Source: Piromyces finnis finn
Lineage: Eukaryota; Fungi; Neocallimastigomycota
Length of the DNA: 64,000 nucleotides
Assembly (NCBI GenBank): GCA_002104945.1
Contig: MCFH01000047.1
Location: 124,001 to 188,000, forward strand
Direction of reading: 5' to 3'
Part shown: piece after piece, positions 6,789 through 48,400 of the stretch
Layout: each line of letters opens with the position of its first letter
Position numbering within the stretch: the stretch's first letter is position 1
Notes under the pieces: generated by a model
The model's database searches: none
What the model was told of the DNA's origin: nothing
The model's input: only the letters and a program-made list of their open reading frames with translations
Program-made: the position numbers and the translations under genes

Positions 6789-6789
6789 A
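6670..6789. repeat. (TAAA)n microsatellite
   Basis: About 30 units with one variant near 6736-6740. Confidence 0.95.
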
Positions 6790-9924: not shown

Positions 9925-10002
9925 AGTAAATGATTTGATTTTTATTTATTTATTTATTTATAAAGTAAATGATTTGATTTTTATTTATTTATTTATTTAT
10001 AA
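9925..10002. repeat. 39-bp perfect tandem duplication
   Basis: agtaaatgatttgatttttatttatttatttatttataa occurs at 9925-9963 and 9964-10002. Confidence 0.9.
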
Positions 10003-15834: not shown

Positions 15835-15865
<31 letters not shown>

Positions 15866-16375: not shown

Positions 16376-16414
<39 letters not shown>

Positions 16415-16458
16415 TTGTTCATTTAATTAAAAAGAAATAATTAATAGCAAATCCTATT

Positions 16459-17392: not shown

Positions 17393-17447
<55 letters not shown>

Positions 17448-21404: not shown

Positions 21405-21407
21405 ATA

Positions 21408-21576
<169 letters not shown>

Positions 21577-21769
21577 TATATTATTATTAACTGAATATAA
21601 AATTATATATATTCATTTATTATTATTTTATAATAAACTTTAATGATTTTAGAACAACAACGCTATAACAGATTAATTGATTTAATGATTGAAAAAAGAC
21701 AATCCTACTTTAATAGAGCCTAATATTTAGTTGAGTTTAATATACTTTCTTTTATAAGGGATACACCTC

Positions 21770-23223: not shown

Positions 23224-24358
23224 TTTTATTGTTTCTCTTACCTTATTTTATTAGGTTTAAAACTAATTTTGTTTTATTTTTTTAAAAAAAAAAAGGAAAA
23301 ATTTGTCATTTTAGTGGTATTATATATCCTTTTTAATTAATAATATTTTTAATTTAAAATTGAATGTGTTTAATCATTTTTTTTATATAAATAAATTAAT
23401 TGTTGTATATTTCAAATTTATATACGAAAAACCTTATTTATTATTATTTCGGAATATAAATTTAAAGGGTTAACTATTATTATTATTATTTTTTTTAAAA
23501 GAATAAAGATAATCAATATTTTATTTTATTATTATTGTAAAATCATCAATAGGAAGTAATTATTTTATAATGTATAAATATAACTAATAGTAATAAAAAT
23601 ATTTGAAATTTGTCATTAATGATAGAATGCTTATTGTTTGTTATTGATAAAGAATTGCTTGTATGTAGGGCACACACTCCATAATGTATGTATTATTAAA
23701 AATGGAAATAATTCCACCTACTATTAAAATAAATCTAATTTTAATTATTAATTAATAATAATTTAGATCTTTAATATATATAAATATAATAATGATAATA
23801 TATTTTTTTATTATTAATAAAAAAAAAAATCAATCTTAATTCATTCCATCTCATAAATCATGTGAATTCATGAGTAATAATAAATAGATTGAATAAATAT
23901 ATCAATTCCAAACATATATTATTAAATATACTAATAAAATATAATAATGAAATGGTAGGGTTGATTTTCAATATTAATAAGAAATTAATGTGATTATAAA
24001 TAATCGTTATAATATTGCTATAATAATACTATATACTATCATCCATATTATTTATATTATATATAATATCTCTTGTTATAATTGTTATACCAAAAGATAT
24101 AGGATAGAAAATTTATTAGATATATTTTAATCGACGTTAGATATTAGTATTTAATAATGCTATTATTATTATTATTTTAAAGTATAACAAAATATTTTAA
24201 ATTTACTTTAAAAGTATTAAAAATACTAATTATTATTATTATATATTTTTTTGGCGTTTCAATATTTTTATTTAGATCTTCATGATTTTTGTAAGAAATA
24301 GAAAATTTTTATTAAACTTAAAAAGAAATTAATTTATATATATAGGTTTTTTTTATTT

Positions 24359-27300
24359 TTATTTATACTTTTAACAAGTATTTACATTATGAATTTAGAA
24401 TAATAGAATAGTAATAAAAAAAAAGACTATTTCGTATTAGAAATAGCAATAACAATATAAATAATATAAATAATAGATAATAAAATAATCTATAATTTAT
24501 AAAAAATCTAATTCTAAAATATATAAATTTAAATTGTATTTTGCCTTCCCAATTTTGTTTTCTTATTTTAGAATCAAGAACTTTTTATAACTTTAATAAA
24601 TTATTTAATAAAATAATAATATGATAGGATATAGTAATAATGGTATAATAAATGTAACTGAATGTATTAGATTTCTATGAATTTTTAATAATAATAAAGT
24701 AACTAAATTATAATAATATTTAAATAATGACATTATATTAAATTATGATATTAAATTATGATACTACTTAAATTAGGTTATTTTTTAATATGTTAATATA
24801 GGGATGTGAATTAAACGTGTTAAAAAAAAAAAAAATCAATTTTTTCTTTTTACATCTTTTCATGGAATGTACGTGCAATAACTTCTTTTTGTTGTTGTGG
24901 TGTTAATTTAACAAAGTTGACAGCATATCCAGATACTCGAATAGTTAGGTTTGGATAGTTTTCTGGATGAGCCATAGCATCTTCTAATGTTTCTCGCTTA
25001 AGAACATTAACATTGAGATGATGGGCCCCCTTGGTGAAGTATCCGTCTAATAATCCGGAAAGATTACCTTGTCGTTCTTTTAATGATTTACCAATGGTAT
25101 TTGGAACAATGGAAAATGTATTTGAAATACCATCCATACATGAATCATAATTAACTTTAGCAACCGATGAAAGTGAAGAAATAGCACCTGAAAATTCACG
25201 ACCATGCATTGGATTACATCCTGGTGCAAATGCTTCTCCTGCTTTACGTCCATCCGGTGTGGATCCTGTTTTCTTACCATATACAACATTGGAAGTAATT
25301 GTAAGAATTGAAAGTGTGTGCTCAGCTCCACGATAAGTTGGAATCTTTCTGAGTTTAGTAATAAGTTTATCCGTGACTGTTTTAGCAAAGTAATCAACAC
25401 GATCATCATCGTTACCGAATTTTGGGAAATCTCCTTCAATCTTGAAATCAACGGTTAATCCGGTCTTTGCATCACGAATTGGTGTAACCTTACCATATTT
25501 GATGGCTGAGAATGAATCAGCAACAACTGAAAGTCCAGCAACACCAAATGCCATAAGACGACGAACATCCGTGTCATGAAGTGCCATTTGAAGTGATTCA
25601 TAACAATATTGATCGTGACTGAAGTGAATAACATTCATGGTGTTAACATAAAGATTTGCAATCCAATCCATGGCTTTGTCATAGGTTTCCCACATCCATT
25701 CAAATGGAATTGGTCCTTCTGGAACTGGTCCAAAATCTGGTCCAACTTGTTTTCCTGTTCTTTCATCCTTTCCATGATTAAGAACGTAGAGCATAAGCTT
25801 TGCAAGATTACAACGAGCTCCAAAGAATTGCATATCCTTTCCAATTCTCATGGCTGAAACACAACATGCAATTCCATAATCATCTCCGAATCTAGCTGAC
25901 ATAAGAGCATCCGATTCATATTGAATGGATGAGGTATCGATAGAAACTTTAGTAGCAAAGTCCTTGAAATTCTTTGGAAGTGCCTTGTTCCAAAGAACAG
26001 TGATGTTTGGTTCTGGTGCTGGTCCTAAATTGTAAAGTGTATTAAGAACACGATAGGAAGTTTTTGTTACTAATGGACGACCATCTCTTCCCATACCACC
26101 AAGTGACATGGTAACCCATGTTGGATCTCCTGCAAATAAATCATTGTATTCCGGAGTACGTAGATGACGAGCAAATCTTAATTTTAAAATGAGATTATCA
26201 ATGATTTCTTGAGCTTCAGCTTCATTGATGATTCCTTTCTTTAAATCGTTTTCGAAGAAACAATCAAGGAAAGCATCAACACGACCAAGTGACATGGCTG
26301 CCCCATCTTGTTCTTTAATTGAACCTAAATAGCCAAAGTATACGAATTGAGTAGCTTCTCTTGCATTCTTTGCTGGCTTAGAAATATCAATGCCATAAGA
26401 TTTAGCCATTTGAGTGAGTTGTTTGAGTGCTTTGATTTGATCAGCAACTTCACCAATTAATTTCATGGTAGGTTCATCCATCAATTTCTTTTGCAATTCA
26501 ACTCTATCCATTTCTTTTTGAGCAATAAGACGATCGGTACCGTAGAGTGCAACACGACGATAATCTCCAATAATACGACCACGACCATAACCATCTGGTA
26601 AACCTGTCATAATCGCATTAGAACGACCAGATCTCATCTCTTTAGAATAAAGATCAAAAACTGCTGTGTTGTGAGTTTTACGATAATCAGAAAAGATATG
26701 CTCAATATTTTCATCCATTGGTACGTTAACAGCAGCAAGAGCATTCTTGACCATATTGACACCTCCAAATGGTTTGATGGCTCTTTTTAATGGTTCATCA
26801 GTTTGATAACCAACAATGACTTCATTTTCTTTATCGAGATAACCAGGTTTATGAGAAGTGATAGTTGAAGGAGTATGAGGATCAACATCATATAAGCCAC
26901 CATTTTCACGTTCTTTAGCCAAATATTGTTCAGCCTTTGCAAAAAGTTTTTTAGTTTTTTCAGTTGGACCTTCAAGGAAGGTAGCATCACCTTCATAAGG
27001 TGTATAATGTTTTTTAATCCAACCTTCAACATCAATTTCCGATTTCTTCATAGCATCATCGGCGATTTCAGATTCAACTTGAGTAGCATAAGATTTATTT
27101 TGAATAGAATTAAAGGTAGATGAAGCAGTAGAAGCAGTGGTAGTAGTGGTAGTAGTCTTGAAACCCGAAATATTATTCATAACTGAGGTAGTATGAATGG
27201 CGCGAGAAGATTTAGGTAATTTAATACCGGCAAACTTTGAAGCAGTAACAGCACTAACTGAAACTGATTTAGCAATAGTGTTACTTACTTGATTTAAAGT

Positions 27301-27417
27301 TAAACTTTCCATTTTAATTATTTATATTTATATGTATTATGTATTTATATTATGTATTTGTAAAAATTAAACTTATTTATTTGACTATTATTTAAATATT
27401 TAAATGTAATTATTAAT
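24359..27417 (-). repeat. Left arm of the PFL palindrome (3.06 kb)
   Basis: Reverse complement of 28631-31688. The coordinate sums are a constant 56048/56047 across the arm. Confidence 0.95.
24850..27312 (-). CDS. pfl: Pyruvate formate-lyase, copy 2
   Basis: 820 aa, identical in protein to copy 3. It differs from copy 1 by two T/A changes (EIADD, YLAKE). Confidence 0.97.
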
Positions 27418-27681
27418 TTTTATTATATCTGTTTATAAAAAATAATTAATTCTTTAATTGATTATTATTATTCTTTCTTTCTTTTTTTTTTTTCTTAAGC
27501 TATTAAAATACTTGTGTAAAATAAAATATTTTGGATATTTTTTAAAAAATTGACATTTTTTTGAATATTTATAGCTTTTTAATTAAATAAAGTAATATAT
27601 TATAATTTATTATTAAATTATTTTGGTATATATTAAAATAAATTAACAATATAATTATTGAATAAAAAAAATTTCAATTTC

Positions 27682-27722
27682 GCATTTTTATCCATAAGTT
27701 TTAAAATTTTGTGGATAAATTT
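27682..27722. promoter_or_regulatory. Candidate cis-element in the PFL2/PFL3 divergent spacer (TTTATCCA..TGTGGATAAA)
   Basis: Homologous to 1370-1405. The half-sites are conserved while the loop length changes (12 vs 17 nt). Confidence 0.4.
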
Positions 27723-28630
27723 CTGATGAAAGTTTAAAAACATTTTCCTTTTTTCGATGCATTAACTTCATCAATTCCTAACTGATTTTTAACTATTTTT
27801 ATAGAGAAAGGTCTTAATTTATTTATTAATATATATTTTATAGTAAAAATTAAATATAAATATATTTATTTACTTTTCAAATATAAAAAAAATAAAAAAA
27901 AAATAGTTTTTAGTATCAAATTTATTTCTATAAAATATTTATATATTGAAAGATTGTTAAAAGATTATATATAGTATATTCATCTATTATTCTTTTTTAT
28001 ATAATAAGATTTTTTTTAAAGGTTAATTCATTACATTAAATTACATTAAAACAATATTTTTTCGTTTTACTAAAAGAATATCGGTTATTTCATATTTTTT
28101 GTTATTTAATCTATTTTATCAATTATTTTTCTTTATAAGAGATATATACAAATTAACTTCTATAATAGTTTAGGCATATTTTAATAATTTTCAAAAAACT
28201 ATAATACTAGGAATTGAATACGAAATTTTTAAAATTCAAAATGTACAAAAATCAATTACATTAACCAATAATGTTAATTTAAACATAATGATTTTTGTAC
28301 ATTTTCATTAATATAGAGTTTAAAGAAAAAGTTTTAAAGGAATCTTTACACGATGATTAAAATTAATTTAATTATATAATATATTACAATATATTACAAT
28401 ATTATAATTATTTTATTAATGTTTTAGTAAATTTTTCCTTTAAAAAATTTTTAAATAATAATAATTATAATAATAGTATTAATGATAAATTTTTAATATA
28501 AATATGAGATTATTTTCCAAGTTCAAATTTATAATTTGTAAAAAATAAAATATTCATATAGAATAGTAATCATTCAAAGAAAAGAAAACATATTATACAA
28601 GTTTAAAATAAACTAGATTTTATATCAAAG

Positions 28631-31600
28631 ATTAATAATTACATTTAAATATTTAAATAATAGTCAAATAAATAAGTTTAATTTTTACAAATACATAATA
28701 TAAATACATAATACATATAAATATAAATAATTAAAATGGAAAGTTTAACTTTAAATCAAGTAAGTAACACTATTGCTAAATCAGTTTCAGTTAGTGCTGT
28801 TACTGCTTCAAAGTTTGCCGGTATTAAATTACCTAAATCTTCTCGCGCCATTCATACTACCTCAGTTATGAATAATATTTCGGGTTTCAAGACTACTACC
28901 ACTACTACCACTGCTTCTACTGCTTCATCTACCTTTAATTCTATTCAAAATAAATCTTATGCTACTCAAGTTGAATCTGAAATCGCCGATGATGCTATGA
29001 AGAAATCGGAAATTGATGTTGAAGGTTGGATTAAAAAACATTATACACCTTATGAAGGTGATGCTACCTTCCTTGAAGGTCCAACTGAAAAAACTAAAAA
29101 ACTTTTTGCAAAGGCTGAACAATATTTGGCTAAAGAACGTGAAAATGGTGGCTTATATGATGTTGATCCTCATACTCCTTCAACTATCACTTCTCATAAA
29201 CCTGGTTATCTCGATAAAGAAAATGAAGTCATTGTTGGTTATCAAACTGATGAACCATTAAAAAGAGCCATCAAACCATTTGGAGGTGTCAATATGGTCA
29301 AGAATGCTCTTGCTGCTGTTAACGTACCAATGGATGAAAATATTGAGCATATCTTTTCTGATTATCGTAAAACTCACAACACAGCAGTTTTTGATCTTTA
29401 TTCTAAAGAGATGAGATCTGGTCGTTCTAATGCGATTATGACAGGTTTACCAGATGGTTATGGTCGTGGTCGTATTATTGGAGATTATCGTCGTGTTGCA
29501 CTCTACGGTACCGATCGTCTTATTGCTCAAAAAGAAATGGATAGAGTTGAATTGCAAAAGAAATTGATGGATGAACCTACCATGAAATTAATTGGTGAAG
29601 TTGCTGATCAAATCAAAGCACTCAAACAACTCACTCAAATGGCTAAATCTTATGGCATTGATATTTCTAAGCCAGCAAAGAATGCAAGAGAAGCTACTCA
29701 ATTCGTATACTTTGGCTATTTAGGTTCAATTAAAGAACAAGATGGGGCAGCCATGTCACTTGGTCGTGTTGATGCTTTCCTTGATTGTTTCTTCGAAAAC
29801 GATTTAAAGAAAGGAATCATCAATGAAGCTGAAGCTCAAGAAATCATTGATAATCTCATTTTAAAATTAAGATTTGCTCGTCATCTACGTACTCCGGAAT
29901 ACAATGATTTATTTGCAGGAGATCCAACATGGGTTACCATGTCACTTGGTGGTATGGGAAGAGATGGTCGTCCATTAGTAACAAAAACTTCCTATCGCGT
30001 TCTTAATACACTTTACAATTTAGGACCAGCACCAGAACCAAACATCACTGTTCTTTGGAACAAGGCACTTCCAAAGAATTTCAAGGACTTTGCTACTAAA
30101 GTTTCTATCGATACCTCATCCATTCAATATGAATCGGATGCTCTTATGTCAGCTAGATTCGGAGATGATTATGGAATTGCATGTTGTGTTTCAGCCATGA
30201 GAATTGGAAAGGATATGCAATTCTTTGGAGCTCGTTGTAATCTTGCAAAGCTTATGCTCTACGTTCTTAATCATGGAAAGGATGAAAGAACAGGAAAACA
30301 AGTTGGACCAGATTTTGGACCAGTTCCAGAAGGACCAATTCCATTTGAATGGATGTGGGAAACCTATGACAAAGCCATGGATTGGATTGCAAATCTTTAT
30401 GTTAACACCATGAATGTTATTCACTTCAGTCACGATCAATATTGTTATGAATCACTTCAAATGGCACTTCATGACACGGATGTTCGTCGTCTTATGGCAT
30501 TTGGTGTTGCTGGACTTTCAGTTGTTGCTGATTCATTCTCAGCCATCAAATATGGTAAGGTTACACCAATTCGTGATGCAAAGACCGGATTAACCGTTGA
30601 TTTCAAGATTGAAGGAGATTTCCCAAAATTCGGTAACGATGATGATCGTGTTGATTACTTTGCTAAAACAGTCACGGATAAACTTATTACTAAACTCAGA
30701 AAGATTCCAACTTATCGTGGAGCTGAGCACACACTTTCAATTCTTACAATTACTTCCAATGTTGTATATGGTAAGAAAACAGGATCCACACCGGATGGAC
30801 GTAAAGCAGGAGAAGCATTTGCACCAGGATGTAATCCAATGCATGGTCGTGAATTTTCAGGTGCTATTTCTTCACTTTCATCGGTTGCTAAAGTTAATTA
30901 TGATTCATGTATGGATGGTATTTCAAATACATTTTCCATTGTTCCAAATACCATTGGTAAATCATTAAAAGAACGACAAGGTAATCTTTCCGGATTATTA
31001 GACGGATACTTCACCAAGGGGGCCCATCATCTCAATGTTAATGTTCTTAAGCGAGAAACATTAGAAGATGCTATGGCTCATCCAGAAAACTATCCAAACC
31101 TAACTATTCGAGTATCTGGATATGCTGTCAACTTTGTTAAATTAACACCACAACAACAAAAAGAAGTTATTGCACGTACATTCCATGAAAAGATGTAAAA
31201 AGAAAAAATTGATTTTTTTTTTTTTAACACGTTTAATTCACATCCCTATATTAACATATTAAAAAATAACCTAATTTAAGTAGTATCATAATTTAATATC
31301 ATAATTTAATATAATGTCATTATTTAAATATTATTATAATTTAGTTACTTTATTATTATTAAAAATTCATAGAAATCTAATACATTCAGTTACATTTATT
31401 ATACCATTATTACTATATCCTATCATATTATTATTTTATTAAATAATTTATTAAAGTTATAAAAAGTTCTTAATTCTAAAATAAGAAAACAAAATTGGGA
31501 AGGCAAAATACAATTTAAATTTATATATTTTAGAATTAGATTTTTTATAAATTATAGATTATTTTATTATCTATTATTTATATTATTTATATTGTTATTG

Positions 31601-31688
31601 CTATTTCTAATACGAAATAGTCTTTTTTTTTATTACTATTCTATTATTCTAAATTCATAATGTAAATACTTGTTAAAAGTATAAATAA
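28631..31688 (+). repeat. Right arm of the PFL palindrome (3.06 kb)
   Basis: Reverse complement of 24359-27417. The unique spacer is 27418-28630 (1213 bp). Confidence 0.95.
28736..31198 (+). CDS. pfl: Pyruvate formate-lyase, copy 3
   Basis: 820-aa ORF with the ACCVS and RVSGYAV motifs. Confidence 0.97.
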
Positions 31689-32461
31689 TAAAAAAAAAAT
31701 TATAATTTCAAATATAAAATAAATATTTTAATTGTTTAATGATAAAGATAAATATAAAAATGTAAAAATGAATGGTTATAATAATAATATTATTTTTATA
31801 AGATAAAATAATTTAAGATTGATTAATAGGAAATACTAAATAATCGCAATATATTATAAAATAAATATTTTACTGTATATATATTTTTTGCTTATAGAAT
31901 GTCTCTTTCATTTATTAATATAATATATATTTTATTTACTATAAAAATACACCTATGTCTAATCAAATATAAATAATTTTTAAATAGGAATAAAGTGTTA
32001 TATTCTATATTCATTATAAAATTAATTATAATATATATTATTTAATATTTTTATATTTCATATTTTATTTTCAAATTTTTTATCATTTAAATAAAAAAGT
32101 TGAAAATTTGTTTGGCCTTTAAAATATTTTTATATCTATATAGTATTTTAAATGAAAATTACAAATATTAAAGCTATAACAAACACAAAATAGTATTGCC
32201 AAATAATGAAAATGAAATAAAAAATAATTATTTATTACATATTTGAAAGCTTTATTTTATGAAAATTGAAAATTAAAAATATATATTTTAATATTTCATT
32301 TTTTATACATATTTCATATTGCACTTATATTATGTATTTATACTTAATTTTTTTTTAAATTTTATATATCATTAAAAGTCAAAAATTATTTTTTACTTTT
32401 TATGTATTCTATTTACATTGAAATTTTTGATTTTTTAACTACTTTATATTTATATGATAGA

Positions 32462-32557
32462 TTTAGTAACATTACGAATAAATTTATTGGCATTGAGAAT
32501 ACCATTCATTTTAGTAACATTACGAATAAATTTATTGGCATTGAGAATACCATTCAT
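32462..32557. repeat. 48-bp tandem duplication spanning the last codons and stop of xylanase A
   Basis: tttagtaacattacgaataaatttattggcattgagaataccattcat occurs at 32462-32509 and 32510-32557. Confidence 0.93.
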
Positions 32558-33476
32558 TCATTCTAACACATGTACCTTGTTGACAACATTTAGCTCCATT
32601 GAAACCATTACCTCCACATTGAGCCCATCTTGCTGCACAATTACCTGCATTATTATTATTATTATTGTTGTTATTATTCCAATTATTATTATTATTGTTG
32701 TTGTTGTTATTGTTGTTGTTATTGTTATTAGTGGCATTACTACCATTACCAATATATACTTTAGCATATGGGAAATCGGCTGTACCACTAGTACCTGATC
32801 CATTACTACCGGCTTCTCCTAATACTTTGGCTTCATGCAATTTACCTAATGTCATTCCAAGCTTTTCCCATTGTTGGAAGTGTGCTGTAATATCAATCGT
32901 ACCACAATCACGAGCATTCTTACGAACACTAAAGTATTGTTTGAATGTGGTATTTCCATCAATCGATGGTCCAGTACGAGTATTTTGATAAACCGTGTAT
33001 ACTGCTCCATCAATAGTATAATCTCCTTTCTTGACATTACCAACCCAATCTCCTGGACGATATGGACTAAGCCAATTGTCAACAACGTAGAATTCAACTA
33101 AAGGACTTCGACTCCAACCATAAATACCGACAAATGAATAATCAACATTTGAGATGTTTTGTTTGACGAGTTTAAAGTCAGCATACAAATGTCCGATTTG
33201 TGAATGCGTTTTAGTACTGTCGAAAGAAAGACCAGAACGACATAAATAATCCTTTGCATTTTGGAATGAGCAAGAGAAAGAACCATCAGAGTAGAAAGTA
33301 GCACTATTATTACCACTATCAGCCCATAATTCATAACCAATTCCACCAATAGAACCAACCTTATTACTTGTTTCTCTAACACTTGTACCTGAGTGTCTAG
33401 CTGAACTGCAGAAACTTTGAGCAAGTGTAGTAGAAGCTAAAGATAAAACAACAGAAGCAACTTTGACGAATTTCAT
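32532..33476 (-). CDS. GH11 endo-1,4-beta-xylanase + Asn-rich linker + CBM1, copy A
   Basis: Signal peptide, GH11 motifs with catalytic glutamates (PLVEFY, VLGEAG), poly-N linker and C-terminal CBM1 (WAQCGG.GF.G..CC...C...NEWYSQC). Intronless. Confidence 0.97.
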
Positions 33477-34387
33477 TTTTAATTTTTTGATTTTTAATAT
33501 ATTAATATTTTATATAAAAGAAAGCTTAAGCTTATAATTTACAATTTCTAATTTCAAATGTTTGAATTATTTTAATTTTTATTTTTATAATTACAATAAT
33601 TATTTACAAATATTTTTTTTTTTATAATTCTATAATTCTATTATAGTTTACTTATATATTTTACAACTAAATATTATTAATTAAATTAATAATGAATAAA
33701 ATAAAATAAAGAAGGAAAACTGACTCTTTTTATATATATATATATTTTTTTTTAAATTGATTCTTTAATGAGAGGGAAAAATAAAGGAAAAAATAAAGGA
33801 TAAAAATGATTAATATTAAAATTAATAAATATTAAATATTATTAAATATTATATTAAATAGTTTATTCATAATTTTTTAAATTAAAATTAATCATAATTA
33901 AAAATATTAATTTATATTAAATATTAAAGAAAAACAATATTTAATTTTCCCTATACTTTTTATTCATAAGTCATAAGTCATTGCTTTTGTTTTTTTTATA
34001 ATAATAAAATAAGAATATACAAAACTTAATTCTATATATATTAATAAATAAACAAATAAATAAATAAATAAATAATTGAATGAAGAAATGATATATTTAA
34101 TTATTTAATAAAATATTTATTTTTCTATTTCATTTCATTTAAAAATAATAATTAAAAATATTATTTTATAAAATGTTATTTTATATTATTTTATTTTTTG
34201 TGTACCTTGTATAAAAGTTCAAAAGATAGATTTAATTTTAATTATCAAATTATTTTATATTCTATATTTAAAATCATAGATTTAATAAATAGTTATATTA
34301 AATCTAAATAATATAACAAATTATATGACTTTCATCAAAGCAGTGAGTAATAACACAACATGTTTTCAATGCATTTATTGTTAATGG

Positions 34388-34496
<109 letters not shown>

Positions 34497-36352
34497 ATTA
34501 TAATTAATACTATTATTTTTAAACAAAAAAATAAAACAAATATGTATTTTATCATATATTTTTTTAATTAGTAAAACTATTTCATTTTTCATTTTTATAT
34601 TTATTTCGTAAAAGGAATAAAGAATTAAATAGAACCATTTTCTTTTTAAAAAAAAAAAATATAAAAAATAAGTATTAATAAATATTAAATAAACATTATT
34701 TTTATTATTATTTAAGGTTTCAATAACAAAGAATAATATCCCACATATAAAATCATTTTCAAATCAATAAAGTTTATATTTTAATATAAATTTATTTACA
34801 TTTAATTTATCTTTTATATTGATAAACCTTAATAAATATTATATTTAATATTTAAAAAATATATCATAAAATTAATTAAAAATATTAATTTTATCATAAA
34901 CTTTAAAGATATATCTTTTTATTTATTATTAACAGGATTAATAAATACAATGGATATTTTTATTATTATGATATTTTATTATATATTTATTAATATAAAT
35001 AATTTTGAATAAAATGAATATGAAAATATGAATTGTCATCGTAGTTTTAAAGAATATATTTAAAAACTTAGTATTTTATATTTTTTTAAATAAAGTCAAC
35101 ATACTATTATTAAAAATAATATATTAAATAACAATAACAAATGAAATATAATATTACTTTTTAATTTTTTTTTTTTTTTTTTTTGAATATTAAATATGAT
35201 GTTTGATAAATTATGATAACTATACAAGTTTTTAATTTTTAAGTTAACGTTTTATTAAATCAGTATTATAATGCTATCTATTTTTCATGCTTGATGTCTA
35301 TTTTTTTTATTAGTTTAAAGAATTAAAGGTAATGCTGTTTTGATAAATATTTTATTAGAATTAAAATTGAAAATAAAATTTAGTTTAGAATAATATTATA
35401 AAGAAAATTGATATTAATTTAATAAAAAAATAAATATAAAATAATATATATATATTAAATAACATCTTTTATTAACATGTTGTCTGTTTTTTTTTATTTT
35501 TAAAGGCCATAATTTGTTATATTATTTAGATTTAATATAACTATTTATTAAATCTATGATTTTAAATATAGAATATAAAATAATCTGATAATTAAAATTA
35601 AATCTATCTTTTGAACTTTTATACAAGGTACACAAAAAATAAAATAATATAAAATAACATTTTATAAAATAATATTTTTAATTATTATTTTTAAATGAAA
35701 TGAAATAGAAAAATAAATATTTTATTAAATAATTAAATATATCATTTCTACATTCAATTATTTATTTATTTATTTATTTGTTTATTTATTAATATATATA
35801 GAATTAAGTTTTGTATATTCTTATTTTATTATTATAAAAAAAACAAAAGCAATGACTTATGACTTATGAATAAAAAGTATAGGGAAAATTAAATATTGTT
35901 TTTCTTTAATATTTAATATAAATTAATATTTTTAATTATGATTAATTTTAATTTAAAAAATTATGAATAAACTATTTAATATAATATTTAATAATATTTA
36001 ATATTTATTAATTTTAATATTAATCATTTTTATCCTTTATTTTTTCCTTTATTTTTCCCTCTCATTAAAGAATCAATTTAAAAAAAAATATATATATATA
36101 TAAAAAGAGTCAGTTTTCCTTCTTTATTTTATTTTATTCATTATTAATTTAATTAATAATTAGTTGTAAAATATATAAGTAAACTATAATAGAATTATAG
36201 AATTATAAAAAAAAAATATTTGTAAATAATTATTGTAATTATAAAAATAAAAATTAAAATAATTCAAACATTTGAAATTAGAAATTGTAAATTATAAGCT
36301 TAAGCTTTCTTTTATATAAAATATTAATATATTAAAAATCAAAAAATTAAAA

Positions 36353-37297
36353 ATGAAATTCGTCAAAGTTGCTTCTGTTGTTTTATCTTTAGCTTCTACT
36401 ACACTTGCTCAAAGTTTCTGCAGTTCAGCTAGACACTCAGGTACAAGTGTTAGAGAAACAAGTAATAAGGTTGGTTCTATTGGTGGAATTGGTTATGAAT
36501 TATGGGCTGATAGTGGTAATAATAGTGCTACTTTCTACTCTGATGGTTCTTTCTCTTGCTCATTCCAAAATGCAAAGGATTATTTATGTCGTTCTGGTCT
36601 TTCTTTCGACAGTACTAAAACGCATTCACAAATCGGACATTTGTATGCTGACTTTAAACTCGTCAAACAAAACATCTCAAATGTTGATTATTCATTTGTC
36701 GGTATTTATGGTTGGAGTCGAAGTCCTTTAGTTGAATTCTACGTTGTTGACAATTGGCTTAGTCCATATCGTCCAGGAGATTGGGTTGGTAATGTCAAGA
36801 AAGGAGATTATACTATTGATGGAGCAGTATACACGGTTTATCAAAATACTCGTACTGGACCATCGATTGATGGAAATACCACATTCAAACAATACTTTAG
36901 TGTTCGTAAGAATGCTCGTGATTGTGGTACGATTGATATTACAGCACACTTCCAACAATGGGAAAAGCTTGGAATGACATTAGGTAAATTGCATGAAGCC
37001 AAAGTATTAGGAGAAGCCGGTAGTAATGGATCAGGTACTAGTGGTACAGCCGATTTCCCATATGCTAAAGTATATATTGGTAATGGTAGTAATGCCACTA
37101 ATAACAATAACAACAACAATAACAACAACAACAATAATAATAATAATTGGAATAATAACAACAATAATAATAATAATAATGCAGGTAATTGTGCAGCAAG
37201 ATGGGCTCAATGTGGAGGTAATGGTTTCAATGGAGCTAAATGTTGTCAACAAGGTACATGTGTTAGAATGAATGAATGGTATTCCCAATGTCAATAA
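36353..37297 (+). CDS. GH11 xylanase-CBM1, copy B
   Basis: 314 aa, identical in protein to copies A and C. Confidence 0.97.
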
Positions 37298-38056
37298 ATT
37301 TACTCTCAATGTCAATAAATTTATTTTTAAATAAATTTATTTTTAAATAAATTTACTCTATAAATATGAAGAAGTTATAAAATCAAAAATTTCAATGTAA
37401 ATAGAATACATAAAAAGTAAAACATAAATTTTAACATTTTAAATGAATCTTATTAATTGTAGAATTTGAATATATTGTAAAAAATAAAAATATAACATTA
37501 AAAAAGATTAGTAAATAATTTTATATATATTATGTAGATTTTAATTTTTTTTCATTATATTATTAATGAAGCATTATTGTTAATAAAATATTAAATATTT
37601 TTAAATATATTAAATACAATGAAATAAATATAATTATTTGTAATTTTGAATTTCATTAATAAAACCTTAATTAAAATAATCTTTTATAAAAAAGAGAATA
37701 TTGTTATATTTCTATAAAAATGAAATATATATGAATTTAAATTTAAACAAAAAAATAAAGTATTGTTTTTAAAATAAGTGAAATATTAATTACTTGCTTT
37801 ATATTAAAATTTTTATATATCAATTATAAAAATATAATATGTATTAAAATTATAATTAGTTTTTCAACAATTTTTAAAAAATCAACTATTCAAAAAGTAT
37901 AATATTATTTAAATTTATTAATGTTAAAATATGGAAAATATATGTAGACAATTGAAATATATTGATATATTGTAATAGATTAAATATATAAACAATATAG
38001 TATATTCATACAAATACAAATATATGATGATTTATTATTTGTCCTAGATTCTAGAA

Positions 38057-38760
38057 GGGGTATTTTCCAGCCAGGATTCTGGCCAAATAATAAATTTTGT
38101 CTGGCTAAAAAAATATGTTACTTTTATTTCTATTAGCAATGTTTTAACTATAAAATATTAATAAAGTTTTCATTATTTAAAAAACTTAATGCTTACTAAT
38201 AAACTATGCTTCTTAGTTTCTTAAAAGGAATTTTTAAAACAAAATCTCTACTTGAATAAAAAAAAAAAAAGAAAATAAAATTTATAATGTTGTGTTACTA
38301 TTATGTTAAACCTTCCAAAAAATGAATTTATTCTTATAAGCATAAATGTGAAATTGCTTATAATTGATAATGAAAATTTTGAATTTAATATCATTCAAAA
38401 TATTTATTTATGAATAATTAGTAATTAATAGACTATTTATAATGTTTACCTACAAATAATGAATATACCTTACTCCATTCATGATTTATACATTTAGTCT
38501 TAAAAATCCTTAAATAATATTGAATGATGGCATTTTATAAAAGCCAACATTAATTAATAAATTCTAAAATATTTACTAATATATCAAAAAAATATGCTAG
38601 AATATTATAATTAATATCAACACATACCCTTAACAAACTTATTAAAGTATAATTAATAACTACTACTTAGATACAAATAAAATACTCGGAAAAGAAAGTC
38701 AAGAAAGTTTATGCTGTAGCAGTTTGTGAAAGCTAACTTAATATTTATATATACATTATA
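38057..38760 (+). mobile_element. Possible decayed DNA-transposon remnant (GC-rich end plus MULE-like transposase relic) in the central spacer
   Basis: GGGGTATTTTCCAGCCAGGATTCTGGCC with a GCCAG-gatt-CTGGC hairpin (38070-38083). A stop-riddled frame near 38500-38600 reads KSLNNIE*WHFIKANIN**ILKYL, resembling the MULE C-terminal TNN..E.WH motif. No second terminus was found. Confidence 0.25.
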
Positions 38761-39702
38761 TACACTTTATATTACTTAAAAAAATAGTGTAAAACTTAAA
38801 AATATCATTTTATCCAAAAATATATACAGATATTTATAAATACATTGATTATACAAATATACATATCAATATAATAAATTTCATATAATTTCAATATTTG
38901 AATTATCAATATGACATTTGGTTAATTATATGGAAATGAAACAATAAGTTTTACAATATAAAATTATAATTAGTGATTATTAAATTGATATTATAGTTTT
39001 TTTCGTAATAATGCCTCCAAAATATAAATAAATTTAATTTATAACGAATATTAGTCGAAAAGTAACTCTAATGAAAGATAATTTATTAGCTATTTAATTT
39101 CAAGAAAGTCAATAAAAATATGTTATTTAAACAATCATTTTTTATAAAAAAAATAATATTTAAAAGTAATACTTGTTTGAAATATAAATATTTTAATATT
39201 AAGCAAGTAATTAATATTTCACTTATTTTAAAAACAATACTTTATTTTTTTGTTTAATTTTAAATTCATATATATTTCATTTTTATAGAAATATAACAAT
39301 ATTCTCTTTTTTATAAAAGATTATTTTAATTAAGGTTTTATTAATGAAATTCAAAATTACAAATAATTATATTTATTTCATTGTATTTAATATATTTAAA
39401 AATATTTAATATTTTATTAACAATAATGCTTCATTAATAATATAATGAAAAAAAATTAAAATCTACATAATATATATAAAATTATTTACTAATTTTTTTT
39501 AATGTTATATTTTTATTTTTTACAATATATTCAAATTCTACAATTAATAAGATTCATTTAAAATGTTAAAATTTATGTTTTACTTTTTATGTATTCTATT
39601 TACATTGAAATTTTTGATTTTATAACTTCTTCATATTTATAGAGTAAATTTATTTAAAAATAAATTTATTTAAAAATAAATTTATTGACATTGAGAGTAA
39701 AT

Positions 39703-40647
39703 TTATTGACATTGGGAATACCATTCATTCATTCTAACACATGTACCTTGTTGACAACATTTAGCTCCATTGAAACCATTACCTCCACATTGAGCCCATC
39801 TTGCTGCACAATTACCTGCATTATTATTATTATTATTGTTGTTATTATTCCAATTATTATTATTATTGTTGTTGTTGTTATTGTTGTTGTTATTGTTATT
39901 AGTGGCATTACTACCATTACCAATATATACTTTAGCATATGGGAAATCGGCTGTACCACTAGTACCTGATCCATTACTACCGGCTTCTCCTAATACTTTG
40001 GCTTCATGTAATTTACCTAATGTCATTCCAAGCTTTTCCCATTGTTGGAAGTGTGCTGTAATATCAATCGTACCACAATCACGAGCATTCTTACGAACAC
40101 TAAAGTATTGTTTGAATGTGGTATTTCCATCAATCGATGGTCCAGTACGAGTATTTTGATAAACCGTGTATACTGCTCCATCAATAGTATAATCTCCTTT
40201 CTTGACATTACCAACCCAATCTCCTGGACGATATGGACTAAGCCAATTGTCAACAACGTAGAATTCAACTAAAGGACTTCGACTCCAACCATAAATACCG
40301 ACAAATGAATAATCAACATTTGAGATGTTTTGTTTGACGAGTTTAAAGTCAGCATACAAATGTCCGATTTGTGAATGCGTTTTAGTACTGTCGAAAGAAA
40401 GACCAGAACGACATAAATAATCCTTTGCATTTTGGAATGAGCAAGAGAAAGAACCATCAGAGTAGAAAGTAGCACTATTATTACCACTATCAGCCCATAA
40501 TTCATAACCAATTCCACCAATAGAACCAACCTTATTACTTGTTTCTCTAACACTTGTACCTGAGTGTCTAGCTGAACTGCAGAAACTTTGAGCAAGTGTA
40601 GTAGAAGCTAAAGATAAAACAACAGAAGCAACTTTGACGAATTTCAT
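39703..40647 (-). CDS. GH11 xylanase-CBM1, copy C
   Basis: 314 aa, with one private silent change (TTA vs TTG Leu, near 40009). Confidence 0.97.
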
Positions 40648-42505
40648 TTTTAATTTTTTGATTTTTAATATATTAATATTTTATATAAAAGAAAGCTTAA
40701 GCTTATAATTTACAATTTCTAATTTCAAATGTTTGAATTATTTTAATTTTTATTTTTATAATTACAATAATTATTTACAAATATTTTTTTTTTATAATTC
40801 TATAATTCTATTATAGTTTACTTATATATTTTACAACTAATTATTAATTAAATTAATAATGAATAAAATAAAATAAAGAAGGAAAACTGACTCTTTTTAT
40901 ATATATATATTTTTTTTTTAAATTGATTCTTTAATGAGAGGGAAAAATAAAGGAAAAAATAAAGGATAAAAATGATTAATATTAAAATTAATAAATATTA
41001 AATATTATTAAATATTATATTAAATAGTTTATTCATAATTTTTTAAATTAAAATTAATCATAATTAAAAATATTAATTTATATTAAATATTAAAGAAAAA
41101 CAATATTTAATTTTCCCTATACTTTTTATTCATAAGTCATAAGTCATTGCTTTTGTTTTTTTTATAATAATAAAATAAGCATATACAAAACTTAATTCTA
41201 TATATATTAATAAATAAACAAATAAATAAATAAATAAATAATTGAATGTAGAAATGATATATTTAATTATTTAATAAAATATTTATTTTTCTATTTCATT
41301 TCATTTAAAAATAATAATTAAAAATATTATTTTATAAAATGTTATTTTATATTATTTTATTTTTTGTGTACCTTGTATAAAAGTTCAAAAGATAGATTTA
41401 ATTTTAATTATCAAATTATTTTATATTCTATATTTAAAATCATAGATTTAATAAATAGTTATATTAAATCTAAATAATATAACAAATTATGGCCTTTAAA
41501 AATAAAAAAAAACAGACAACATGTTAATAAAAGATGTTATTTAATATATATATATTATTTTATATTTATTTTTTTATTAAATTAATATCAATTTTCTTTA
41601 TAATATTATTCTAAACTAAATTTTATTTTCAATTTTAATTCTAATAAAATATTTATCAAAACAGCATTACCTTTAATTCTTTAAACTAATAAAAAAAATA
41701 GACATCAAGCATGAAAAATAGATAGCATTATAATACTGATTTAATAAAACGTTAACTTAAAAATTAAAAACTTGTATAGTTATCTTTATTTATCAAACAT
41801 CATATTTAATATTCAAAAAAAAAAAAAAAAAAAAAATTAAAAAGTAATATTATATTTCATTTGTTATTGTTATTTAATATATTATTTTTAATAATAGTAT
41901 GTTGACTTTATTTAAAAAAATATAAAATACTAAGTTTTTAAATATATTCTTTAAAACTACGATGACAATTCATATTTTCATATTCATTTTATTCAAAATT
42001 ATTTATATTAATAAATATATAATAAAATATCATAATAATAAAAATATCCATTGTATTTATTAATCCTGTTAATAATAAATAAAAAGATATATCTTTAAAG
42101 TTTATGATAAAATTAATATTTTTAATTAATTTTATGATATATTTTTTAAATATTAAATATAATATTTATTAAGGTTTATCAATATAAAAGATAAATTAAA
42201 TGTAAATAAATTTATATTAAAATATAAACTTTATTGATTTGAAAATGATTTTATATGTGGGATATTATTCTTTGTTATTGAAACCTTAAATAATAATAAA
42301 AATAATGTTTATTTAATATTTATTAATACTTATTTTTTATATTTTTTTTTTTTTAAAAAGAAAATGGTTCTATTTAATTCTTTATTCCTTTTACGAAATA
42401 AATATAAAAATGAAAAATGAAATAGTTTTACTAATTAAAAAAATATATGATAAAATACATATTTGTTTTATTTTTTTGTTTAAAAATAATAGTATTAATT
42501 ATAAT

Positions 42506-42626
<121 letters not shown>

Positions 42627-43535
42627 CCATTAACAATAAATGCATTGAAAACATGTTGTGTTATTACTCACTGCTTTGATGAAAGTCATATAATTTGTTA
42701 TATTATTTAGATTTAATATAACTATTTATTAAATCTATGATTTTAAATATAGAATATAAAATAATTTGATAATTAAAATTAAATCTATCTTTTGAACTTT
42801 TATACAAGGTACACAAAAAATAAAATAATATAAAATAACATTTTATAAAATAATATTTTTAATTATTATTTTTAAATGAAATGAAATAGAAAAATAAATA
42901 TTTTATTAAATAATTAAATATATCATTTCTTCATTCAATTATTTATTTATTTATTTATTTGTTTATTTATTAATATATATAGAATTAAGTTTTGTATATT
43001 CTTATTTTATTATTATAAAAAAAACAAAAGCAATGACTTATGACTTATGAATAAAAAGTATAGGGAAAATTAAATATTGTTTTTCTTTAATATTTAATAT
43101 AAATTAATATTTTTAATTATGATTAATTTTAATTTAAAAAATTATGAATAAACTATTTAATATAATATTTAATAATATTTAATATTTATTAATTTTAATA
43201 TTAATCATTTTTATCCTTTATTTTTTCCTTTATTTTTCCCTCTCATTAAAGAATCAATTTAAAAAAAAAATATATATATAAAAAGAGTCAGTTTTCCTTC
43301 TTTATTTTATTTTATTCATTATTAATTTAATTAATAATATTTAGTTGTAAATATATATAAGTAAATTATAATAGAATTATAGAATTATAAAAAAAAAAAT
43401 ATTTGTAAATAATTATTGTAATTATAAAAATAAAAATTAAAATAATTCAAACATTTGAAATTAGAAATTATAAATTATAAGCTTAAGCTTTCTTTTATAT
43501 AAAATATTAATATATTAAAAATCAAAAAATTAAAA

Positions 43536-44474
43536 ATGAAATTCGTCAAAGTTGCTTCTGTTGTTTTATCTTTAGCTTCTACTACACTTGCTCAAAGTTT
43601 CTGCAGTTCAGCTAGACACTCAGGTACAAGTGTTAGAGAAACAAGTAATAAGGTTGGTTCTATTGGTGGAATTGGTTATGAATTATGGGCTGATAGTGGT
43701 AATAATAGTGCTACTTTCTACTCTGATGGTTCTTTCTCTTGCTCATTCCAAAATGCAAAGGATTATTTATGTCGTTCTGGTCTTTCTTTCGACAGTACTA
43801 AAACGCATTCACAAATCGGACATTTGTATGCTGACTTTAAACTCGTCAAACAAAACATCTCAAATGTTGATTATTCATTTGTCGGTATTTATGGTTGGAG
43901 TCGAAGTCCTTTAGTTGAATTCTACGTTGTTGACAATTGGCTTAGTCCATATCGTCCAGGAGATTGGGTTGGTAATGTCAAGAAAGGAGATTATACTATT
44001 GATGGAGCAGTATACACGGTTTATCAAAATACTCGTACTGGACCATCGATTGATGGAAATACCACATTCAAACAATACTTTAGTGTTCGTAAGAATGCTC
44101 GTGATTGTGGTACGATTGATATTACAGCACACTTCCAACAATGGGAAAAGCTTGGAATGACATTAGGTAAATTGCATGAAGCCAAAGTATTAGGAGAAGC
44201 CGGTAGTAATGGATCAGGTACTAGTGGTACAGCCGATTTCCCATATGCTAAAGTATATATTGGTAATGGTAGTAATGCCACTAATAACAATAACAACAAC
44301 AATAACAACAATAATAACAATAATTGGAATAATAACAACAACAATAATAATAATAATGCAGGTAATTGTGCAGCAAGATGGGCTCAATGTGGAGGTAATG
44401 GTTTCAATGGAGCTAAATGTTGTCAACAAGGTACATGTGTTAGAATGAATGAATGGTATTCCCAATGTCAATAA
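43536..44474 (+). CDS. GH11 xylanase-CBM1, copy D
   Basis: 312 aa. The Asn linker is two residues shorter and the protein is otherwise the same. Confidence 0.97.
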
Positions 44475-45464
44475 ATTTACTCTCAATGTCAATAAATTTA
44501 TTTTTAAATAAATTTATTTTTAAATAAATTTACTCTATAAATATGAAGAAGTTATAAAATCAAAAATTTCAATGTAAATAGAATACATAAAAAGTAAAAC
44601 ATAAATTTTAACATTTTAAATGAATCTTATTAATTGTAGAATTTGAATATATTGTAAAAAATAAAAATATAACATTAAAAAAAATTAGTAAATAATTTTA
44701 TATTATGTAGATTTTAATTTTTTTTTTTTTTTTTTTTCATTTAATAAAGATTTTTAATATGAAAAAATATTCTACTTTTTTTTTTTTTTAATTAATTTAT
44801 AATAAACAATAGATTTGTTTAGATATATTTTGAAACATCCATTGATATTTTACATTAAAAAAAAAAAAAATAAGTATATAATAAAAGTAACTAAATTGGA
44901 TTTTATTATAAATATATCAATACTTTACAGATAATAAATTTTTATTCTATTAGACATTTAAAATAAGTTTATCAATGTATAATGAATTTATAATGGTAAT
45001 TATATTATCAATCTATCAAATAATATAATTCAAATAATATAATTTATGGTAATTATGCTTTACCTTTACTTTTAATGTAAATAAAATTAATCTTGTTAAT
45101 CTATGCGAATGCTTTATATATTGTTTATATTTTATTTTTATTTATTTTATTTTTTTTATTAATTACATTTTTTAAAGTTTTTTTTTTTTACTTTATTTTA
45201 ACTCTATTTTCAATTTTTATTCTTTGTATTTTTTATTAAATTATAAATATATATATATATATATTTACATTTATTATTTATAATAGTTTAATTATTTTAT
45301 TTTATTTTATTTTCTATAATTTATTATCTTTTTTTATATCTATTACAATTTTTTTAATTTTTTTAATATTCTATTTAAAAAAAAAATCATATATAACATA
45401 GATTATATCTATTTTTCTTATGAATAGACATAATTTAAAAATTTATATCAAATAAATTATTTAT

Positions 45465-48400
45465 TCAAAAAGAACCAGCAGTATATTGAATATTTTTAAT
45501 TTGGAATTCAACACCCTTACCAGTGGCATCTTGGAAGTTAAGACGGTTATATTGTGGAACGCTAACTCTTACAGTGTAAGTAGTCCATTCTTCAGTTGGT
45601 TTAACAGTTTTAACTGGATTCCAATCTGATGCTTCAGAATCAGAAAGAGCTAAACTAATGGTACTACCAGCAACAGAAGACTTAATATCGAAACGAATAG
45701 TACCCTTTTTGAAGTATTCTGGACTGTAGAAGGAAAGTGCTCCAAAGTCTGGTTCAATAGTTACATTCATACCATCTTCATATTCAATAGTAGTACTCCA
45801 AGACCAATTTTCGTATGGTTCTAAGAATTGATCACCCATTTCATAGATAGTAATAATTTCATTACTGACTGGTTCAGAGTTATCAATCTTAAAAACGGAA
45901 CTTGGACCGGTGGTGTATTTAATGTTCTTGAGACGGAATTCAACACCTTCACCACTTTCATCTTGGAAGTTGAAACGAATGAAAGCATCACAAGCAATAT
46001 CGAAAGCATAAGTCTTGTATTCGGTAGTAGCCTTGACTTGACCAAGATGAACCATTCTATCAGTATCAGCTTCGAAAACAGAAATGTTAACAAGAGTACC
46101 ATCAACTGGAGCCATAATGTCAAAGCTCATAGCACCATTGGAAAGTGTATTTGGAGAGAAGATAGAGAGGGTAGCTTGGTTAGTTTTGTTTGAACTTTCA
46201 ACAGTGTTAACAATCATTTCACCATCACAAAAGACATCAGTTTCCCAAGCCCAATTTTGGAATTCTTTTGGGAAGAAATCTTCATTACCATAGATGGTAA
46301 TAATATCGTAAGTTGGTTCAGTTTTTTCGACCTTGAAAACGGAACTTGGACCGGTGGTGTATTTAATGTTCTTGAGACGGAATTCAACACCTTCACCACT
46401 TTCATCTTGGAAATTGAAACGAATGAAAGCATCACAAGCAATATCGAAAGCATAAGTCTTGTATTCGGTAGTAGCCTTGACTTGACCAAGATGAACCATT
46501 CTATCAGTATCAGCTTCGAAAACAGAAATGTTAACAAGAGTACCATCAACTGGAGCCATAATGTCAAAGCTCATAGCACCATTGGAAAGTGTATTTGGAG
46601 AGAAGATAGAGAGGGTAGCTTGGTTAGTTTTGTTTGAACTTTCAACAGTGTTAACAATCATTTCACCATCACAAAAGACATCAGTTTCCCAAGCCCAATT
46701 TTGGAATTCTTTTGGGAAGAAATCTTCATTACCATAGATGGTAATAATATCGTAAGTTTGATTAAAGTCAGCAACAGTACCGGTAGTGTAAAGAATATTT
46801 TTAAGACGGAATTCAACACCTTCACCACTTTCATCTTGGAAGTTGAAACGAATGAAAGCATCACAAGCAATATCGAAAGCATAAGTCTTGTATTCGGTAG
46901 TAGCCTTGACTTGACCAAGATGAACCATTCTATCAGTATCAGCTTCGAAAACAGAAATGTTAACAAGAGTACCATCAACTGGAGCCATAATGTCAAAGCT
47001 CATAGCACCATTGGAAAGTGTATTTGGAGAGAAGATAGAGAGGGTAGCTTGGTTAGTTTTGTTTGAACTTTCAACAGTGTTAACAATCATTTCACCATCA
47101 CAAAAGACATCAGTTTCCCAAGCCCAATTTTGGAATTCTTTTGGGAAGAAATCTTCATTACCGTAAATAGTGGTAATTTGACCCTTGGCAAAGAAATCAT
47201 CTCTGGTACCTGAAGAATAGAAAATATTTTGAAGACGGAATTCAACACCTTCACCACTAGTATCTTGGAAATTGAAACGAATGAAATCAGGGCAATCAAT
47301 ATCATAGATATAAGTCTTGTATTCAGTAGTAGCCTTGACTTGACCAAGTGGAATCATTCTATCAGTATCAGCTTCAAAGATAGAAATGTTAACAAGAGTA
47401 CCATCTACTGGAGCCTTAATATCAAATTTAAGGGCACCATTGGAGAAATTGATTGGAGTAAAGATTGAAAGAGTAGCTTGATTAGTTTTATTAGAACTTT
47501 CAATAGTATTAACAATCATTTCACCGTCAAAGGAAACATCAGTTTCCCAAGCCCAATTTTGGAATTCTTTTGGGAAGAAATCTTCATTACCATAAATTTT
47601 AATAACCTTACTCTTATTTTCATCACCATTAACAACTTCACCGTATTCAAATTCAGCAGCAGAACCAGTTGAAACAACTACATTTCTAATAGAAATGGTT
47701 TGAGCAGCAGAGGAACCGACTTGGAAAAAGAAACGATCATATTTTGGGAATTCAATATCAACAGTAACAGTATTCCATTTAGTTCCAGCGGCAACCTTAC
47801 TAATAACGATTGCGTCTTCAGTTTCAAAATTTTGAGCATAAACAGTAACTGGGGCGTTATCGAAACTAGATTTAATATCGAAACGGAGAGAACCATTTTC
47901 AAATAATTCACCTTCGTATTTGAGAGAAAGAGCACCCCAAGCATTTTCTTCAATGACACCAGTCATACAATTATCAGTGAATGAAATTTCGGCACTCCAT
48001 GATTGATTACTAGTGGTATCTGGAAGGGCGTCAGTATTAGCGTAAAGGACAGTGTATTCTGGTGGTGGAACAACAGTTCTTGGCATACCACACCATTGAT
48101 TATTTTCATAACCCCAATCACCATTATAATCAGTTGCAATAACCTTACTACCAAAACAGCATGGAAAACCATATTCAACAGACCAACAGTCCTTAGTTTT
48201 ATCTTTAGTTGGGTCTTTTATTTCAGTTTTAATACCACACCAATGACCAAATTCATAACCCCATGTACCATATTCATCAACTTCATAAACTATATTACTT
48301 TCACAACATGGATAACCTAATAATGAAGCCCAACAATCATCTTTATTTTCTTCATATAAATCTTCAATACCACACCAGGTATTGTTTTCATAACCCCAAG

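Follow-up and report, generated by a model that had tools for sequence, protein, structure and literature searches.

Nested inverted copies of PFL and GH11 xylanase genes in the gut fungus Piromyces finnis: probable recent local duplications with later gene conversion

How did near-identical copies of two unrelated enzyme genes come to lie side by side as inverted repeats in the genome of a gut fungus? Gut fungi are prized for arsenals of plant-degrading enzymes that are very large and highly duplicated, and we know of no description of the mechanism by which these enzyme families expand. The locus that raises the question is a 64,000-nucleotide stretch of Piromyces finnis DNA (assembly GCA_002104945.1, contig MCFH01000047.1, positions 124,001 to 188,000; hereafter 'the window'), in which a palindrome of two pyruvate formate-lyase (PFL) genes lies next to an alternating array of four GH11 xylanase genes. 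An initial annotation, made from the sequence alone, read these repeats as a gene-dosage system marked by a recurring spacer of 1.2–1.4 kb. The answer that we favor, with a probability of roughly three in four, is that the palindromes arose through recent local inverted segmental duplications in P. finnis, with native intergenic DNA as their spacers, and were later modified by non-allelic gene conversion.

Results

Adjacent palindromes of PFL and xylanase genes

Genes were called from open reading frames (ORFs) and Pfam domains, and repeats were located by an inverted-repeat scan together with BLAST self-comparison. The GC content of the window is 15–30%, with intergenic DNA at approximately 10–17%. 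Two PFL genes of 820 aa form the first palindrome, and four xylanase genes, each encoding a GH11 and a CBM1 domain, follow in the order - + - + (Table 1). The two blocks are approximately 0.7 kb apart, and with a third PFL copy near the left end of the window the totals are three PFL and four xylanase genes. Both identities rest on Pfam matches above the gathering score (PF02901 (PFL-like), 680.7 bits, and PF01228 (Gly_radical), 122.3 bits; PF00457 (GH11), 136.7 bits, and PF00734 (CBM1), 39.5 bits). The initial annotation had named the same two genes and had described them as neighboring inverted repeats with near-identical arms and sharp boundaries; the domain matches and the repeat scans bear out this description.

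Table 1. Coordinates of the repeat units and spacers, as positions in the window
Feature	Coordinates	Strand	Details
PFL3	1702-5104	+	third PFL copy; direct copy of 28161-31564
PFL1 arm	24347-27427	-	gene 24850-27312, 820 aa; left arm; inverted repeat with 28621-31699
PFL spacer	27428-28620		13.5% GC; no ORF of at least 40 aa
PFL2 arm	28621-31699	+	gene 28736-31198, 820 aa; right arm
X1 unit	32369-34324	-	GH11-CBM1 gene 32532-33476; 3' 165 bp diverged
Inner spacer A	34325-35508		1184 bp, 11.6% GC; (ATT)44 microsatellite
X2 unit	35509-37823	+	gene 36353-37297; 844 bp upstream, 526 bp downstream
Outer spacer	37824-39176		1353 bp, 17.4% GC; tail-to-tail center of the outer palindrome with 5.3-kb arms
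X3 unit	39177-41490	-	gene 39703-40647; mirror of X2
Inner spacer C	41491-42689		1199 bp; inverted copy of spacer A
X4 unit	42690-44725	+	gene 43536-44474, 312 aa; 6-bp linker deletion

The PFL arms are 3.1 kb long and differ at 5 positions over 3.08 kb, and the length of the spacer between them depends on the measure: repeat extension gives 1193 bp, counting from the last perfectly matching base 1213 bp, and BLAST 1171 bp. PFL3 matches 28161–31564 with 99.15% identity over 3411 bp (BLAST); the right 460 bp of the spacer (28161–28620) accordingly recurs 5′ of PFL3, and the left part is unique. Because PFL3 carries the same 460 bp, this segment is not unique spacer but the upstream region and 5′ untranslated region (UTR) common to PFL2 and PFL3. 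PFL1 lacks this region, and the DNA adjoining it is unrelated. Relative to the gene, the copied segment extends from about −105/−115 to +501 in PFL1 and PFL2, and from −575 to +366 in PFL3.

The xylanase array is a palindrome of a palindrome: 32369–37823 mirrors 39177–44623 (98.6% over 5.47 kb by BLAST), and spacer C repeats spacer A in reverse orientation at 99% identity. A direct tandem copy of a 7.17-kb unit was rejected: spacer orientation favors the mirror model, as do three informative sites that pair X1 with X4 and X2 with X3, and none supports direct-repeat pairing. The 3′ flank of X4 is explained by neither simple model, mirror or direct duplication, and the 3′ ends of the xylanase copies differ (+526, +250 and about +165). 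A perfect 48-bp tandem duplication at 32462–32558 spans the X1 stop codon and forms part of the 3′ divergence of X1. In public gene models, X1 appears as spliced products of 242–244 aa (3837–5946 and 6383–8062 in two retrieved pieces); these models are probably wrong, since the DNA holds an intact 314-aa GH11–CBM1 ORF.

Three independent centers without a common spacer sequence

Three of the four palindrome centers are head-to-head and one is tail-to-tail. They record three independent events, not four, because spacer A recurs, inverted, as spacer C. The initial annotation had described four similar, unique spacers: the similarity in size stands (1193–1213, 1184, 1353 and 1199 bp), but uniqueness does not, given the A/C pair and the recurrence of 460 bp of the PFL spacer. 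Its proposal that head-to-head centers place a shared upstream region between the genes is correct in the arrangement of three centers but fails for the PFL palindrome, where only one side carries the PFL2/PFL3 upstream region.

Pairwise local alignments among the three spacers, on both strands, all fell within shuffle range, and a shared spacer element was rejected. No ORF of at least 40 aa lies outside low-complexity DNA in the three spacers, and none holds a credible gene. The spacers are not eroded old arms either, with z ≤ 2.2 for the left half of each against the reverse complement of its right half. Traces of older homology beyond the arm boundaries, which had also been claimed, exist for approximately 165 bp past the X1 stop codon (z = 24 against shuffles), but not in the spacer halves or the PFL outer flanks, where z values of −0.2 to 2.2 lie within shuffle range. 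The spacers therefore look like ordinary AT-rich intergenic DNA rather than a recurring element or dedicated system.

Two smaller features of the inner spacers deserve mention. A 10-nt match with an 8-bp self-complementary core (34354–34364 and 35474–35484) lies 25–30 nt inside the two edges of spacer A; it may be a remnant of arms that once reached further, or else a short inverted repeat. Nothing comparable was seen at the other centers. Both inner spacers carry (ATT)n microsatellites of 44–48 units (34389–34521 and 42481–42625), and related arrays also occur at 21400–21611 and 17249–17450.

Uneven divergence and gene conversion between copies

Divergence between the copies is sharply uneven. 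X1 and X2 differ at 2 of 1768 positions in the upstream region and coding sequence (CDS), but at 27 of 164 positions past the stop codon (Fisher p = 5e-28); the 3′ flank of X1 is thus 16% diverged, whereas its core matches the other copies at 99.9% identity. PFL3 and PFL1, which lie 19 kb apart in opposite orientation, show no difference over 2053 bp of CDS, 5 in the 528 bp before it and 5 in the 333 bp after it (Poisson, about 4e-9). The PFL3 promoter is common to PFL2 only, and the transcribed part of PFL2 is closest to PFL1. X4 is a mosaic: its three informative upstream sites resemble those of X1, its mirror partner, and its 3′ flank is identical to that of X2 and X3 for 250 bp, beyond the reach of X1 homology. 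No single duplication history fits these patterns; therefore, non-allelic conversion has acted, and the arm-to-arm conversion suggested initially is upheld by the uneven divergence of both gene sets and by the X4 mosaic.

X2 and X3 show 3 substitutions in the 1767-bp core and 1 in the 275-bp 3′ flank (4 over 2.04 kb in total), and the noncoding parts of their arms (844 bp and 526 bp) are as identical as the CDS. This noncoding identity, together with the lack of homology in the spacers and beyond the PFL arms, is easier to reconcile with duplication in recent times than with palindromes of great age. Arms of at least 99.8% identity that flank a non-duplicated spacer, and divergence that is sharply uneven or mosaic, characterize conversion-type palindromic amplicons, and both are present here.

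Transcription of the copies

RNA contigs from two runs were compared with positions 27300–33299 of the window, and cover both the PFL and xylanase genes heavily. One begins at 28524, 212 nt 5′ of the PFL2 start codon (ATG) and approximately 100 nt outside the arm; therefore, PFL2 and PFL3 are transcribed from their common upstream region. RNA depth is 215 beside PFL2 versus 2–8 beside PFL1, and contigs reach into the upstream DNA on the PFL2 side only. Given this asymmetry and the unrelated DNA beside PFL1, the PFL spacer is not a symmetric shared promoter. PFL1 is nonetheless transcribed, as a PFL1-specific G (equivalent to 31472) occurs in an RNA contig. The X1-specific 3′ UTR (32462–32539) is likewise present in RNA, and each xylanase arm carries its own 844 bp of upstream DNA. 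Retrocopying, with arm ends corresponding to transcript ends, was rejected: the RNA contig starts outside the PFL2 arm, and the copy ends differ.

Contig agreement and sequencing depth

Another contig of the same assembly, MCFH01000138.1 (28 kb), is collinear with 26266–47354 through all four centers, and differs from the main contig over 21 kb by 9 substitutions and 215 gap openings, mostly in homopolymers. This pattern excludes a second real locus and indicates that the same locus was assembled twice and polished poorly, the smaller contig being a redundant copy of 24480–47354. MCFH01000138.1 also folds back without a spacer (12788–12834 of the retrieved piece; approximately 24480–24563 in the window), and this fold-back is probably a long-read chimera. 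The features expected of such a chimera, namely a missing spacer, arms differing in homopolymers and single-copy depth, were found only there.

For an estimate of depth, Logan contigs of a 2016 P. finnis DNA run were compared with the same part of the window as the RNA. The assembler's word depth is 110–138 in unique AT-rich DNA, 375 in the PFL 3′ flank (about 3x), about 537 in the PFL CDS and 706 in the xylanase CDS. The xylanase:PFL ratio of 1.31, for which composition bias is limited because both regions are coding, compares with 1.33 expected for 4:3. These depths support approximately three PFL and four xylanase copies, and the depth check that had been proposed at the outset did not point to single copies. 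Apparent 'joints' in RNA and DNA contigs were discarded, since their sides span 20–30 nt in low-complexity DNA and their loose ends match nowhere else in the window.

Inverted paralogue arrays elsewhere in gut fungi

Other loci were sampled through paralogous proteins. In P. finnis, contig 38 (MCFH01000038.1) holds GH11 genes in the order + + - + - + (2131–19045 of the retrieved piece), among them a young palindrome with a 757-bp spacer and 2.56-kb arms of 99.1% identity; its other gaps are 1765, 2755 and 3794 bp at about 95% identity. A head-to-head GH11–CBM1 pair on contig 28 is separated by 2873 bp (95%), and a head-to-head PFL pair on contig 37 (MCFH01000037.1) by 7973 bp (75%), whereas contig 22 has direct GH11 repeats only. 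The contig 37 pair, at 979–12646 of the retrieved piece, combines a PFL gene of the long type (813 aa) with one of the short type (733 aa), and is an old inverted pair; a glycine-radical fragment lies between the two genes.

An independent assembly, that of Neocallimastix lanati, has six GH11 genes in perfect alternation (JACVTC010000020.1, 1–19334 of the retrieved piece), with nested inverted arms of up to 6.2 kb at 97% identity and adjacent-arm gaps of 1.8–2.7 kb. Inverted paralogue arrays thus appear to be real and recurrent in Neocallimastigomycota, because arrays with such divergence cannot have come from chimeric reads. At the PFL loci sampled in N. californiae, A. robustus and Piromyces sp. 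E2, one gene is present and no inverted repeat lies within 10 kb on either side. As synteny of these loci with the window is not established, this is weak evidence that the PFL palindrome lacks the orthologues in related species that mark a Y-type palindrome as older than its arm identity suggests.

Recurrent local inverted amplification, as the initial annotation had proposed, is therefore repeated in the window, at other P. finnis loci and in N. lanati. The spacer of 1.2–1.4 kb as the mark of a system is not supported by this comparison: the window offers three centers without common sequence, and other gaps measure 757 bp and 1.8–8 kb. A tight mode at 1.2–1.4 kb is not shown. Tentatively, and with more doubt than conviction, it may be that mirror duplication rather than head-to-tail tandem duplication prevails for highly used genes in Neocallimastigomycota, with a copy placed approximately 0.8–1.4 kb away, nested arrays forming from it, and conversion following.

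Neighboring genes

An intron-less nitroreductase-family gene (256 aa, 22453–23223) adjoins the PFL palindrome. On the 3′ side of the xylanase array, 45465–48590 encodes a 1041-aa protein with three CBM10 dockerin stretches, and the gene contains an internal tandem repeat of four copies (unit 429–444 bp, 74–98% identical). CBM10 dockerin proteins are typical of Neocallimastigomycota.

Discussion

The favored history, compatible with the observed structure, copy number, nesting, uneven divergence, mosaicism and transcription, would begin with a gene-sized segment of 2–3 kb copied in reverse approximately 1.2–1.35 kb from its source, once for PFL and once for the GH11–CBM1 gene. The xylanase pair, or most of it, would then have been mirrored again to give the - + - + order, and PFL3 would have arisen by direct duplication of PFL2 plus its promoter. 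As spacers, this history leaves the native AT-rich intergenic stretches that separated source from insertion point. Conversion, which involved the arms of a palindrome as well as the copy at a distance of 19 kb, would have evened out the coding cores while leaving older or differently derived flanks. The initiating error may have been a switch of the replication or repair template to the opposite strand, either as a fold-back or as an error resembling ODIRA (origin-dependent inverted-repeat amplification), and hairpin-prone DNA of 10–17% GC may have favored it. Because palindromes are known to be unstable in yeast, those with very short spacers may have been lost, so that survivors would have spacers of several hundred base pairs or more. 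Extra copies may raise enzyme output.

That the palindromes are instead products of assembly, made by long-read chimeras or by over-expansion of a collapsed repeat, is very improbable. The assembly does hold one probable artefact, the spacer-less fold-back of MCFH01000138.1 in a contig that differs almost only by homopolymer indels, but chimeric fold-backs lack a spacer, whereas the window palindromes have spacers of 1.2–1.35 kb. Two contigs agree through all centers, the depths fit three and four copies, copy-specific variants of PFL1 and X1 occur in RNA contigs, and the diverged (93–97%) N. lanati array of the same architecture cannot be a chimera. Greater age is the subject of another alternative, in which ancient head-to-head pairs were kept near-identical purely by arm-to-arm conversion and the sharp arm ends mark the limits of conversion tracts. 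The divergence of the X1 3′ flank beside a nearly invariant core would fit this history, as would the older head-to-head GH11–CBM1 and PFL pairs elsewhere in P. finnis and the alternating GH11 array in N. lanati; we nevertheless give it little credence, as no residual homology remains in any spacer or beyond the PFL arms, PFL is single copy without a nearby inverted repeat in the three other gut fungi sampled, and the 844-bp upstream and 526-bp downstream noncoding arms match as closely as the CDS does, which is what copies of recent origin should show. A mobile cassette or transposon was discarded as the carrier, since the PFL and xylanase copy sets lack a common pair of termini; the spacers contain no transposase ORF, and terminal repeats were not searched for separately.

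A dedicated or mechanistically constrained form of amplification, in which the inverted copy is placed at a preferred distance of approximately 1.2–1.4 kb because, for example, the geometry of a stalled fork sets the reach of the template switch, is unlikely, although somewhat less so than the two preceding alternatives. It draws on the closeness of the three independent centers (1193, about 1190 and 1353 bp) and on the widening of gaps as identity drops: arms of 99% or more are separated by 757–1353 bp, those of 95% by 1765–3794 bp and those of 75% by 7973 bp, a trend compatible with gaps that measured about 1 kb at birth and grew as the arm ends eroded. Yet the sample here is three, a verified young GH11 palindrome has a spacer of 757 bp, the spacers share no sequence or motif, and the independent centers differ in kind, two being head-to-head with 105–844 bp of upstream DNA in their arms and one tail-to-tail.

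Several observations weigh against recent local inverted duplication followed by conversion, or limit what it explains. The depths are assembler word depths, uncalibrated as copy numbers, and the DNA run possibly comes from the same sample as the assembly. The junction 28620/28621 is the sole one explicitly bridged by a short-read DNA contig; for 27427/27428, a k-mer search with five sampled words listed unrelated large genomes, each with a single word, and did not list the fungal run. Neither microhomology nor a short inverted repeat is demonstrable at the junctions, a result that is uninformative in DNA of 85–90% AT. The verified young spacers, 757–1353 bp in four independent palindromes, are compatible with a preferred birth spacing near 1 kb. 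Finally, a dosage benefit from PFL1 is unproven, as this copy lacks the PFL2/PFL3 upstream region and has little upstream RNA.

Inverted gene amplicons with concerted evolution are, as a kind, well known. Ampliconic palindromes with arm-to-arm conversion were reportedly described on the primate Y (and X) chromosome by Skaletsky et al. and Rozen et al. in 2003, and the initial comparison of this locus with Y palindromes holds as a resemblance: near-identical inverted arms, expressed genes, a non-duplicated spacer and mutual correction of copies. The likeness has limits. Arms here are 2–5 kb long with spacers of approximately 1.2 kb, whereas Y arms range from 9 kb to 1.45 Mb; the palindromes here are apparently young and lineage-specific, with no orthologous palindrome in the three sampled gut-fungal PFL loci; and conversion here includes a direct copy 19 kb away and has no link to a non-recombining sex chromosome.

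Closer in scale are the inverted duplicates Hsp70Aa/Ab and Amy-p/Amy-d of Drosophila, whose concerted evolution was reportedly described by Bettencourt and Feder in 2002 and by Hickey et al. in 1991; Katju and Lynch are said to have found, in 2003, an excess of inverted orientation among recent duplicates in C. elegans. As in the Drosophila pairs, gene-sized inverted copies lie a few kilobases apart with homogenized cores and diverging flanks. Unlike them, the pair here was mirrored into an alternating four-gene array, two unrelated genes were amplified side by side, and the GH11 pattern is shared by at least two genera of a fungal phylum that diverged early. In Piromyces sp. E2, Harhangi et al. 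(in Gene, 2003) reportedly found head-to-tail clusters of near-identical (hemi)cellulase genes; these are likewise clustered, multi-copy, near-identical genes for carbohydrate-active enzymes (CAZymes), but the copies in E2 are direct and those here alternate.

Under ODIRA, 2n+1 copies would be expected, with the central copy inverted, short loops at the junctions and a third copy running into native downstream DNA; its junction loops are short interrupted inverted repeats (PMC4689423). The order X2–outer spacer–X3–spacer C (inverted)–X4 resembles the predicted order, but the loops here are 1184–1353 bp, four xylanases and two adjacent PFL genes do not amount to 2n+1, and X4 stops at 44725 without a second outer spacer after it. 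Full-text literature searches returned no published account of genes amplified as palindromes or inverted copies in an anaerobic fungus, in agreement with the initial annotation, which knew of no such description in gut fungi.

For work on the P. finnis genome, an assembly that contains at least one redundant, badly polished fold-back contig means that spacer-less palindromes need read-level checks. If gene families usually expand by inverted amplification with conversion, spacers that can invert and loci that are locally unstable would be predicted, and annotators and authors of expression studies would be warned against assigning a read from such copies to a single copy, which cannot be done. 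This route would also explain the near-identical, multi-copy CAZyme and fermentation genes of gut fungi.

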